A model generated the notes under the pieces. It did not search any database and was not told the origin of the DNA. It worked only from the letters and a program-made list of their open reading frames with translations. Of a stretch of DNA of 64,000 nt, positions 828 to 50,957 are shown in pieces. Position 1 is the first letter of the stretch. Every line of letters begins with the position of its first letter. The DNA is from Selaginella moellendorffii (taxonomy: Eukaryota > Plantae > Lycopodiophyta). The position numbers and the translations under genes are program-made. The DNA is taken from the NCBI RefSeq assembly GCF_000143415.4, contig NW_003314325.1, forward strand, positions 900,086 through 964,085. Direction: 5' to 3'.

Positions 828-1266
828 CTATCCCATCAGCGGCGGGGGTGCGTAGTGTGGGTTCATGTTCGCGCCTGGACCGCCATAGTCGCTGATCTCT
901 CCAAGGGGCGGGGGCGCGCCGTAGTGTGGGTTCCTATTTGCCCCTGGAGCGTCATAGTCGCTGGTATGGACCTCTCCAAGGAGCTTCCTGCCTTTGAGAG
1001 CCTGGAAGAAAGAGAGAGAACTTCTTATAACAGGAAAGGAAAAGGAAACTTAGAAGAAGATTTCTCAACCTGGCCCTGTGCAGCCGGCAAGCTTGCATCT
1101 GTAAATCCAACTCAAAACAGTGAGAAACGAGATTGTGGAGGAAGGTAACGGAGAAATGAGATCTATATGTGCTCTCTCTACCTTTGTTTCCACTAGTAGC
1201 AAAAGCGGCAGTGATGAGCAGGCATGAGAGCAGGGCTCCGAGCACAAGCTTGCGAGAAGGAGCCAT
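828..1266 (-). CDS. PSY-like sulfated-peptide precursor with two tandem DY cores (95 aa, 3 exons)
   Basis: Exons 1266-1182, 1098-1070, 1001-828, all GT-AG and phase-compatible: MAPSRKLVLGALLSCLLITAAFATSGNKDASLPAAQGQALKGRKLLGEVHTSDYDAPGANRNPHYGAPPPLGEISDYGGPGANMNPHYAPPPLMG*. Signal peptide, RKLL site, cores resemble PSY1 (DYGDPSANPKHDPGVPP). Confidence 0.85.
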
Positions 1267-1542
1267 TTCTATACTAAGAGAGCCTATAGATCCAAACCAG
1301 GAGAAAAAGAATGAGAAAAACAAAGGCCAAGCTCCCGTAGATAAAGGCCGAGGAGCACAGACTCATACAAAAGCTGGCACAGACGTCGAAGGAATGCAAG
1401 TGTTGTCCACTGAGTGGCCAAGAGTTAACGTCGATACATGGTTCCGTTAGTGCATTGGATAAAACGAGTTTTTCTATGTTAATGGGAATTAACATATTTT
1501 ATCAGGAGAGAGAGATCTCGACTAATATATAGCGATCATTAG

Positions 1543-3294
1543 ATGTTGGAAGCATCGAGCAACATCGTGGGATCGCAGCAATCCTTCTTTGCGACGCTCC
1601 TGAGCCAGTCTGGAGGCTCTGGCGATCTCGATCAAACCCGGAAGATCCACTCCCGGATAGTGGACAGCGGCTACTCCAAAGACAAGTTTCTCCTCAATCT
1701 CATCATCCAGGCTTACGGAAAATGCGGCAGTGTCGGAGATGCGCGCCGTGTCTTCTCCGCGATCGATCACCCCAATCTCTTCTCATGGAACATCATGATC
1801 CAAGCATATGCCCGAAACGGGCATCTAGATGAAGCGCGTAACCTCTTTGATCGATCTCATTCCCCCGATCCAGTCGCATGGAATGAAATGATCACTGCCT
1901 ATGCGCAGCTTGGCGAGATGGAGGAAGCCAAAATTTTGTTTGATCGAGTGCCAGAAAAGAGTGAAATCACCTGGACCGGGATGATAACAGCATATGCCAG
2001 AAACGGGCATCTGAACGAAGCCAGGACGGTGTTTGACGCAATGCCGATCGAGAAGAAAACCATAGCTTCGTGGACGGCAATGCTCCAGGGCTACACCCAA
2101 AACTCCCGGATCGATCAGGCCCTTGATTTCTTTCAGACGTTCCCGGCCCACAACGTGGTCTCCATCACCGCCATGGTGTCGGCGCTCACGAGCCACGGCC
2201 GTGGCGACGAGGCCGAGATGCTGTTCTTATTTATGCCCGCGAGGAATTTGCTCTCCTGGACTGTGATGATCCAGGCCTACTCCAAGCAGCAGCGCATCGA
2301 TCGCGTCCGCGAGCTCTTCGAGTCGATGCCCGAGAGGGATCTCATCAGCTCCACGGCGGCGCTCCAGGCATTCTCCCGCGGTGGCGATCTCGACTCGGCC
2401 AAGCGCGTGTTTGATTCCATGCCCGAGCACAACACCATGTCGTGGGGATCAATGGTGGTGGCGCTTGCGGAGCGGCGGCGGCTCGAGGAGGCGGCGCTGC
2501 TCCTGGAAGCTATGCCTGGCGAGAAGAGCGTGGTGGGAGCAACAGCGCTATTCCAGGCGTATGCCCGGGATGGGCATCTATGCGAGGCTGAGATGATCTT
2601 CCGCGAGATGGGTGATCGCGACACCATTGCCCATAATGCGATGCTCCAGGTCTACGCGCAGCACGGCCAGATGGGCGACGCCATTGCGGAGTTTCAATCC
2701 ATGGCGTGGCGAAGCTCCTCATCATGGAACGCGATGCTCTCGGCGTATGCCCAGCACGGGCATGTGGATCACGCGGCGGGTTTCTTCGCGGCTATGCCAA
2801 TCAGGAGCTCTCCTGTGGCGTGGAACGCCATGATCGCGGCGTATAGACGCAACGGCAAGGACGAGCGCGCGATTTCCTCCTTCTGGGCGATGATCCTCGA
2901 GGGGATCCCGTGCGATGCGTCGACCATCGCGAGCGTTCTTGGGAGCTGCAGTCATGCGGGGAGATTTGCCGAGGCGTGGAACTTGTTCCTGGCAATGAAG
3001 AAGGACTTTGGCGTGGATCCATCACACGAGCACTACTCGTGTGTGGCGGACGTTCTCGGGAGATCTGGACTGGTGAGAGACGCCGAGGAGCTCATCAAGA
3101 CAATGCCATTCGTTCCAGATGAGCGTGGCTGCGGTGGATTGCTCAATGCTTGTAGAGTTCATAGGGATTTGGAGAGAGGAGCAAAGGTGGCGATGAATGA
3201 GTTTAAAAGTGAGAGGAGCGAGCCTGTAAGTTACATGCTTCTTGCAAATTTGATTACTGCTAAGATACCAAGTTTGGCTTCTGATTCAAAATAG
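1543..3294 (+). CDS. PLS-class pentatricopeptide repeat protein (many short ~31-aa repeats, E-type C-terminus, no DYW)
   Basis: Intronless 583-aa ORF; repeated SWNxMIxAYAxxGH motifs; C-terminal CSHAG...HYSCVADVLGRSG...MPF...LLNACRVH. Confidence 0.93.
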   Translation: MLEASSNIVGSQQSFFATLLSQSGGSGDLDQTRKIHSRIVDSGYSKDKFLLNLIIQAYGKCGSVGDARRVFSAIDHPNLFSWNIMIQAYARNGHLDEARNLFDRSHSPDPVAWNEMITAYAQLGEMEEAKILFDRVPEKSEITWTGMITAYARNGHLNEARTVFDAMPIEKKTIASWTAMLQGYTQNSRIDQALDFFQTFPAHNVVSITAMVSALTSHGRGDEAEMLFLFMPARNLLSWTVMIQAYSKQQRIDRVRELFESMPERDLISSTAALQAFSRGGDLDSAKRVFDSMPEHNTMSWGSMVVALAERRRLEEAALLLEAMPGEKSVVGATALFQAYARDGHLCEAEMIFREMGDRDTIAHNAMLQVYAQHGQMGDAIAEFQSMAWRSSSSWNAMLSAYAQHGHVDHAAGFFAAMPIRSSPVAWNAMIAAYRRNGKDERAISSFWAMILEGIPCDASTIASVLGSCSHAGRFAEAWNLFLAMKKDFGVDPSHEHYSCVADVLGRSGLVRDAEELIKTMPFVPDERGCGGLLNACRVHRDLERGAKVAMNEFKSERSEPVSYMLLANLITAKIPSLASDSK

Positions 3295-3307
3295 CTCTTT
3301 GTTTCGT

Positions 3308-49407: not shown

Positions 49408-49562
49408 GGTATTACTATAAATATCATTTTTAAGTTCTTATAATAATTGTTATGTTTTAAAAAATTAAAGCTTTTTAGAATCAGTTAAACATCAATAAAT
49501 CCTCTATTTTAACTTATTTAAAAGGAAAACAAAATTCTTGAGTTCCTATTGTTTTGGGAGTG

Positions 49563-50391
49563 TCATCTCCTTCTATCATTGTCTCTTAATCGCCTGCCAT
49601 CATCATCAACACGGCTCTCCCTTCTCGGAGATCTCTTCCGAGACTCTAACCGAGGCCTTTCACCTCTCGACTCGTCGTGTCGATCGTGTTTCCACTTTGT
49701 CTCGTCGTCCGCTCCCCATCCAGTGTTCTTGTTCCTCTGAAGAAACAAGGAAGTTAAAGAGACAAATGTAAACATCTGAACGATTCAACTCACGTTTTCG
49801 TCGTGTGAGAACTTGCAGGAATCACCCCGGCTACAGCTTCCGCGCTGGAACTCGTAGCAAACACCGTTTTCTTCTCGTTTCCTCTGCCGCTCTTCCTCGT
49901 CTTCCTCTTCTTTCTTCCGATACTTTCTCACATGATCCACACGCAGCGTGCGTCCAGCGACTTGAGCTCCATTCAGATTATCTGTGCATCAAATCATCAA
50001 TCAGCCAGCAAGTTTCGGAAAAAATCCAGAGAGAGTTACTCACCCACGGCAAGTGTGGTGCTTCGTTGATCTTCGTACGCGAGAAATCCATAGCCCTTTG
50101 ATTTCCCGGTACCTTTGTCGCGAATTAAATTCACATCGACAACTTCGCCGTACCTATCCCCCCCAAAAAATCGATAAGAGCGAAGAAGCATAGAGATCTA
50201 AACGAAAGAATCACTTACTGTGCAAACACCGCAAGAATATCGCCCTCGTTGAGCTCGTAGGCTAGCCCGCCAAAGAAAATGTAGGCCGAATCCTTGTACT
50301 CGGCGTGCCAGGATGCAGACTCGGCGATCCCAGACGCACTCTCCCGCGCAGTGATCTTCTGGAGATTCTTCACCTGCGTCAAGGGATTCAT
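49563..50391 (-). CDS. RBMX2: RBMX2/Snu17(Ist3)-like RES-complex RRM protein with CCCH zinc finger (4 exons)
   Basis: MNPLTQVKNLQKI...SWHAEYKDSAYIFFGGL...[41 protein letters not shown]...RVDHV...CYEFQRGSCSRGDSCKFSH; mostly missed by the ORF track. Confidence 0.92.
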
Positions 50392-50671
50392 CCCTCAAGA
50401 ACCCTAATTTCAAGAACCCTAACTCAAAGGGCAAAAGGGTGGAGTGAATTGGGTTTATAAGAATATGCGAATCTTAGTTAAAGATTCGCCCTCCACTTTA
50501 GCTAACACGTGAGTGACGTACGGCGCGCTCGATCGTGGAGCTTTAAACAAAGGCTAGCTAGAACACGAAAAAAAAGAGACTAGAACGCGGCTAGCGCGAA
50601 GTCAAATAAATGAAAATGGAGGAGCCTCTCATAGTTTGTTCCTTGGATCTTCTCATCTTTCGTATAAGATC
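50392..50671. promoter_or_regulatory. Short divergent promoter region with telo-box-like AACCCTAA x2 and CACGTG/TGACG motifs
   Basis: 280 bp between two divergent ATGs; aaccctaa at ~50400 and ~50415; aacacgtgagtgacgta at ~50504. Confidence 0.5.
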
Positions 50672-50957
50672 ATGGCAGCGCAGCAGCGTTTACTTGCGAT
50701 CATTCTCATGGCGATCCTGGGGGGAATTTCGCTGCTAGCAAATTCCATCTCTGGAGCTGGAGCTCGTCCACTGGATCATCAAGGTCTGTGTGAACTTTTC
50801 ACAATGTTTTCCCTTGAAGATCTTCCATACTTTGTTCTTCCCAGACGATCACTATCGTTCTCTCGTCGAGGAAGACGGGGACTACGCACCGACGTCGAAC
50901 CAGAGAGACTTCCAGAAGAGCCACGGACCTGTGTCTTCCAAACATCCTGGAAACTAG
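50672..50957 (+). CDS. Small secreted DY-motif peptide precursor, family unassigned (74 aa, 2 exons)
   Basis: Exons 50672-50783, 50845-50957: MAAQQRLLAIILMAILGGISLLANSISGAGARPLDHQDDHYRSLVEEDGDYAPTSNQRDFQKSHGPVSSKHPGN*. Confidence 0.72.

Follow-up and report, generated by a model that had tools for sequence, protein, structure and literature searches.

PSY peptide hormones are defined by a few positions, a starting Asp-Tyr (DY) pair followed by Asn, His and Pro, with His11 conserved in all 32 aligned PSYs and Pro13 in 31 of them (PMC7913133). In Arabidopsis and moss, binding of PSY to PSYR1-3, the At1g17230 receptor clade, turns off a growth-repressing signal (bioRxiv 2026.07.25.740709). PSY orthologs have been named for moss, liverwort and spruce and not for Selaginella (Furumizu et al. 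2021; PMC8462819); the lycophyte ligands go unnamed there even though the same source reports TPST in Selaginella moellendorffii and lists one ortholog of the At1g17230 clade for this species (PMC8462819). The proteases that process PSY are still unidentified, hence the appeal of a protease gene linked to precursor genes. Here we describe a window of 64,000 nucleotides, the whole stretch of DNA that was analysed, from scaffold GL377629.1 (GCA_000143415.2). A sequence-only reading had ascribed it to a probable lycophyte, and the source is indeed S. moellendorffii: a single-exon PPR protein encoded in the window is on record for this scaffold, and the locus agrees with the window at every base over 13 kb. 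The same reading described four small secreted DY-peptide precursor genes, here called G1 to G4, beside an amplified subtilase that might process their products. In our assessment, G1-G3 probably represent a Selaginella branch of PSY, with G4 an unrelated or strongly diverged neighbour and the subtilase adjacent by chance.

The four genes occupy these window positions:

828..1266, minus strand: G1, PSY-like precursor of 95 residues with an RKLL site and two DY cores; exons 1266-1182, 1098-1070 and 1001-828; spliced model, with intact copies on GL377635 and upstream on GL377629.1
47460..48047, plus strand: G2, PSY-like precursor of 87/88 residues with an RNLV site; exons 47460-47538, 47622 or 47625-47653, and 47892-48047; splice joints in 4 studies, allele on GL377604
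48389..48750, plus strand: G3, PSY-like precursor of 74 residues with the 11-residue core DYDDPSHNTRP; exons 48389-48494, 48568-48617 and 48682-48750; both joints in 4 studies
50672..50957, plus strand: G4, secreted DY precursor of 74 residues with an RSLV site and no known family; exons 50672-50783 and 50845-50957; joint in 2 studies

The NCBI gene table holds no gene at any of these positions. The structures proposed by the sequence-only reading stand: all introns are GT-AG, a DY core lies near each C-terminus, and the N-termini are hydrophobic (11-residue Kyte-Doolittle maximum 2.8-3.3; signal peptides were judged by hydropathy alone). RNA had been suggested as a check on the junctions, and it bears them out for G2-G4, where all five introns are spliced exactly as predicted in RNA-type contigs from 4 runs in 4 studies; these contigs, guessed to be RNA, cover G2-G4 and carry no expression levels. 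Both G2 introns are spliced out, and two acceptors 3 nt apart (tandem NAGNAG, 47619-47624) yield the 87- and 88-residue forms. Both G3 introns are spliced in 4 of 4 runs and the G4 intron in 2, and a poly(A) loose end follows G3 at 48867 in one study. The intergenic interval at 49.0-49.5 kb has no RNA-type contig. A four-exon model of G2 was rejected by stops and by RNA.

The contigs also reveal an optional intron in the 5' untranslated region of G2 (window 47082-47430), and in 2 runs G4 contigs keep their intron. G4 converges on a DUF7953 gene (window 50843-51034); one contig extends from the DUF7953 gene as far as exon 2 of G4, and the 3' ends of the two genes may overlap.

Comparison between scaffolds argues that the coding regions are maintained. 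Reading frames and splice sites are preserved in the G2-G4 alleles on GL377604 and in the G1 counterpart on GL377635. Across the four coding regions there are 8 synonymous changes and 7 replacements (pN/pS 0.27, binomial p=0.013); these counts are small, and the G1 pair among them may be paralogous and not allelic. Between haplotypes nothing changes in the cores of G2, G3 and G4, nor in the protein encoded by G4 exon 2. Exons 1 and 2 of G1 and G2 are 75-85% alike at the DNA level, which makes these two genes paralogs; G3 has only its intron phases and its core in common with them. In both haplotypes, G3 ends in two stop codons (window 48748-48780) followed by a would-be ELGPP that resembles the GPP tail of G2, and G3 may be a shortened form.

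The cores themselves place G1-G3 closest to PSY. The pattern DYxxPxxN occurs 4 times in the six frames of the window, every time in G1-G3; the expected number is 0.12, and none of 60 simulations gave more than 1. The G2 core, for instance, reads DYADPSPNTDP.... We scored the cores against the mature Arabidopsis peptide sequences given in PMC11534595 and PMC8462819, with shuffles as the null. Scores to PSY exceeded shuffles for both G1 cores (G1a, p 0.036; G1b, p 0.002), G2 (p 0.002) and G3 (p 0.015), whereas scores to CIF or RGF were not clearly above shuffles, and 9 of 11 residues of the G3 core are identical in AtPSY2. At 74-95 residues with a signal peptide, all four precursors fall within the PSY range of about 70-105, and all have cores starting with DY. 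Asn8 is present in G1a, G1b, G2 and G3 and lacking in G4. One DY core per precursor had been described, which holds for G2, G3 and G4, but G1 has two; likewise the proposed basic sites are of RxLx/RxxL type in G1, G2 and G4, whereas the RKVV of G3 is not.

Signatures of other sulfated peptides were absent from G1-G4. None has the C-terminal 13-residue DY...PxHN/NN core of RGF/GLV/CLEL, the 21-24-residue DY core with PxP and PP/GP-[VI]-x-[HN] of CIF/TWS1, or the YIYTQ pentapeptide of PSK. Database queries, made with single exons or public protein ids, returned little: Pfam gave no match for the last exons of G1-G4, G2 exon 3 as a query retrieved no homolog, and the last-exon frame of G1 retrieved only the truncated public paralog SELMODRAFT_424023. 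Atlas offered a weak lead from G2 exon 3 to a 'PSY3-like' cluster (0.85) and no cluster for G4.

G4 stands apart, so the local, diversifying PSY-like family suggested by the sequence-only reading shrinks to G1-G3. Homology of G4 to G1-G3 is not detectable, its scores lie within shuffles (p 0.85 for CIF, 0.74 for RGF) and it has no PSY match either. It has an acidic context ahead of DY, and 25 residues run from DY to the stop. G4 would appear to encode a secreted DY peptide that is either unrelated to G1-G3 or much diverged from them, and calling it PSY-like is unsupported.

Several observations weigh against placing G1-G3 with PSY and the subtilase with chance. His11 is replaced by Pro in all four G1-G3 cores and by Phe in G4, with G1 having a His at position 12 instead; Pro13 is Tyr in G1a and G1b, Arg in G2 and absent in G3. 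With both residues missing, we infer rather than observe that the receptor of G1-G3 belongs to the PSYR clade. G3 scores p=0.03 to RGF as well, and all shuffle p-values rest on short peptides. Finally, one subtilase copy lies 7-11 kb from peptide genes on all three scaffolds examined, where the chance for a single locus is about 1-2%. A two-residue deletion would explain G2 and G3, their Pro11 then being the former Pro13. Because Pro replaces His11 in every core, we would file G1-G3 as putatively working like PSY and not as strict members.

These same substitutions are what an alternative placement would build on, namely that G1-G3 form a separate lycophyte DY-peptide family, like moss PSYL, that signals through a different subfamily-XI receptor (RGI, GSO) or serves in defence. 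In the moss PSYL peptides, which are counted as their own class, His and Pro are shifted, and G1 copies turn over fast in a duplication hot spot rich in PPR and GDSL genes. However, DY and Asn8 sit in PSY register, the match of G3 to AtPSY2 is close, and both the precursor size and an R-x-L site 6-10 residues ahead of DY fit PSY. We regard a separate family as unlikely, although it keeps appreciable weight.

The subtilase copies, the duplications around them and the remaining G1-type sequences are arranged as follows:

11642..14329, minus strand: subtilase copy 1, inverted, with a 1-nt deletion in exon 7 near 12.71 kb
25568..28246, plus strand: subtilase copy 2, with the same 1-nt deletion near 27.19 kb
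37847..40500, plus strand: subtilase copy 3, intact, 10 exons, 727 residues, signal peptide-I9-S8-Fn3
20166..46079, no strand: tandem segmental duplication (~20.2-34.2 kb and 34.2-46.1 kb, 91-98%), by self-comparison
9.4-16.3 kb: inverted partial copy of the duplicated unit, by self-comparison
21827..21983, minus strand: relic of a G1/G2-type exon 1 and intron 1, with no hydrophobic core and no exon 3
21682..21838, minus strand: tandem copy of the relic, 100% over 157 nt
35262..35426, minus strand: segmental-duplication copy of the relic, 98%
Upstream of the window, L011:1342-1780, 6461-6870 and 16240-16660, L012:1833-2260 and 6471-6870, and L001:5914-6250: further G1 copies in intact two-core, one-core, DY-to-DC, exon-1-less and broken forms

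Three subtilase copies are present as first described, but copies 1 and 2, which share 99.4% identity, are frameshifted: their exon 7 deletion leads to a stop at codon 438, before the catalytic Ser, and both are probably pseudogenes. The GL377604 subtilase has no such deletion. The public 699-residue models SELMODRAFT_121213 and _121107 for copies 1 and 2 mask the frameshift, in that they leave out a portion of exon 7 and translate intron 7, and were discounted as evidence of intact genes. The repeated unit comprises a TPT piece, PPR pieces, the relic, a kinase, the subtilase, a hydrolase, a PPR gene and the 3' end of a ZIP transporter, and none of G2-G4. The three decayed exon-1 copies that had been noted do exist, but they are one relic multiplied by the same duplications as the subtilase. 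Along the 22 kb fetched from GL377604, the order is GT61, phosphatase, DUF7953, G4, RRM, G3, G2, ZIP, PPR, hydrolase, one subtilase, kinase, relic and TPT. Amplification of the subtilase thus seems to have been passive and mostly pseudogenic, and its copies look like passengers of local DNA duplications.

Amplification of G1 is partly independent of the subtilase. GL377629.1 carries further G1 copies ahead of the window: one that lacks exon 1 at about -2 kb, an intact one at -22,990, one at -28.1 kb that has a single core and Cys in place of Tyr, and a broken one at -37.9 kb. GL377635 holds four more. G1 copies have been co-amplified with GDSL lipases (at least 4 on GL377629.1). Within the fetched span, the 43 kb of L011 and L012 contain five G1-type copies but no subtilase; a further kinase-subtilase module could lie in a 9-kb stretch upstream of the window that was not seen. 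Some G1-bearing units do include a subtilase: GL377635 has a kinase-subtilase module ~11 kb from one G1 copy, so that some duplicated units hold both, like everything else in the span. Where the matching GL377635 has this module, L006:17000-20602 has a copia-type retrotransposon. Among the G1 copies, position 11 of the second core varies between Pro, Arg and Leu.

The left part of the window (1-8000) matches the end of GL377635 and the right part (20000-58000) matches GL377604; haplotype pairing therefore switches inside the duplicated region, and some copies there may be assembly products.

Could the subtilase nevertheless be the processing protease? For PSY, the best candidates are SBT6.1, which would cut the RxLx site, and the phytaspase SBT3.8, which would act at the DY terminus (PMC7913133); copy 3 resembles neither. 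SBT6.1/site-1 proteases have ~1000 residues and a membrane anchor, whereas copy 3 has 727 residues in an I9-S8-Fn3 arrangement, and its exon 5 matches human S1P at E 2e-4 versus 3e-36 for cucumisin. Phytaspases have Asp at P1 of the prodomain junction (PMC6043521), where copy 3 has His; its catalytic triad is Asp134/His201/Ser514. By these comparisons copy 3 would be an ordinary secreted pyrolysin-type subtilase, which might still cleave the precursors since other secreted subtilases cut such sites.

A linked module, in which copy 3 matures the G1-G4 precursors and selection maintains the linkage, draws on position (three scaffolds place a subtilase copy 7-10 kb from G2-G4 and ~10 kb from a G1 copy), on the intact reading frame and signal peptide of copy 3, on the cutting of RxLx-type sites in other precursors by secreted subtilases such as SBT3.5 and SBT1.1, and on a lineage-specific enzyme with at most ~45% identity to the other full-length proteins retrieved. 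However, all three scaffolds come from one individual, so their shared linkage is inheritance. Precursor and enzyme are not duplicated or inherited as a unit: the duplicated blocks leave out G2-G4, two subtilase copies are broken, the other haplotype shows a single copy in its fetched 22 kb, several G1 copies were amplified without any subtilase, and unrelated ZIP, PPR and hydrolase genes stand between peptide genes and subtilase. Proximity is also less telling than it looks. The species has 80 listed S8A genes, with SBT4 and SBT5 expanded (PMC6713707 supplement). On an assumed 106-Mb genome, a subtilase falls within 7-10 kb of a given locus with a chance of 1-2%, and over an assumed 20-50 peptide loci the chance of at least one such neighbourhood rises to 19-53% (7-10 kb), or 26-53% within 10 kb. 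Among the titles and abstracts seen, none describes a linked hormone-subtilase cluster. Synteny anchored on GT61 speaks neither for nor against conserved linkage: it turned up no second Selaginella, and the flanks of the Diphasiastrum and Marchantia GT61 loci are empty within 10 kb.

We therefore judge a selected peptide-protease module very improbable. The fuller proposal, a lycophyte locus that keeps sulfated-peptide hormone genes, with G4 as founder of a new family, beside its own lineage-specific processing subtilase, is likewise very improbable. The link to a dedicated protease put forward by the sequence-only reading is unsupported, given the passive, mostly pseudogenic amplification, the partial independence of G1 and the mismatch in enzyme class. 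We conclude that the subtilase probably sits 7-10 kb from G2-G4 by chance and that the locus picks out no processing candidate.

That the genes are transcribed relics or chance open reading frames, with copy number partly an assembly artefact, could appeal to the many decayed G1 copies nearby, to near-identical blocks (98-99%) that could be haplotypes merged in one scaffold and to the double stop and GPP-like tail of G3, but it is barely credible given splicing in 2-4 studies, a purifying-selection signal, the motif excess over chance and G2-G4 cores that are the same in both haplotypes, and because an assembly artefact could touch the subtilase copy number and not the peptide genes. Real lycophyte PSY variants beside a coincidental protease remain, overall, the reading we think likely.

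For every step after transcription, the course given here is one that we infer. The signal peptide would be removed in the endoplasmic reticulum, and in the Golgi an SBT6.1-type protease, the product of a gene outside this locus, would cleave the RxLx/RxxL site of G1, G2 and G4. The DY tyrosine would be sulfated by TPST, hydroxylation may affect some prolines, and further trimming, again by proteases whose genes lie elsewhere, would free peptides of 11-25 residues into the apoplast. G1-G3 peptides would most likely bind Selaginella's single PSYR-clade leucine-rich-repeat (LRR) kinase, shutting off its growth-repressing, stress-promoting output. Repeated segmental duplications, meanwhile, would have copied the subtilase along with a kinase and PPR pieces.

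Two further neighbours had been reported, and both are present:

8652..9334, minus strand: LRR receptor-like gene, broken and spread over several frames (the 8.65-9.33 kb remnant)
53490..54980, plus strand: GT61 glycosyltransferase, annotated neighbour

The LRR remnant was rejected as a cognate receptor, as the gene is broken and its kinase part was not seen. The GT61 was considered as a peptide arabinosyltransferase. HPAT belongs to a different family from GT61. Hydroxyproline arabinosylation is carried out by HPAT (PMC11534595), and the GT61 was set aside. Among 8000 candidates scored, its matches at E < 1e-40 that bear names come from lycophytes, liverworts and mosses, and none of those named is from a seed plant. 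A tRNA-Ser-like sequence was seen by eye at window 46250-46320, upstream of the start of the His-rich ZIP transporter.

The G1-G4 cores have no occurrence in the searchable literature. They provide short, synthesizable candidates for lycophyte ligands and let one ask, as a natural test, whether PSYR binding requires the near-invariant His11; G4 may be an orphan ligand of another subfamily-XI receptor.

Among described systems, copy 3 shares its signal peptide-I9-S8-Fn3 layout and triad with the pyrolysin-type SBT1-5 proteins (cucumisin, SlSBT3, SBT5.2/5.4-like; E ~1e-116 to cucumisin), whereas its sequence is Selaginella-specific and its assignment stops at the pyrolysin type, with the subfamily below that not fixed. 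CIF/TWS1 and RGF/GLV have the DY start in common with these peptides, and the 25-residue, Asn-ending core of G4 is CIF/TWS1-like in length, with scores not above shuffles. Moss PSYL1/PSYL2 (Lyapina et al.) resemble G1-G3 as lineage-specific DY peptides with displaced His and Pro and two loci close together; unlike G1-G3, they are bryophyte-specific and have a DYDNHxP-type motif, and the likeness is one of description. Rice OsPSY1 (Os05g40850), like G1, encodes several PSY-like cores per precursor, four versus two, but the G1 cores differ from each other and bear a second Tyr. The PSY family itself (AtPSY1-9, OsPSYs, PpPSY1; the PSYR ligands) differs in having His11 where G1-G3 have Pro and a Pro13 that is not in register in G1-G3, and G3 ends after 11 residues; in common are a signal peptide, a precursor of 70-100 residues, an upstream RxLx/RxxL site (in G1 and G2), the DY start and Asn8.

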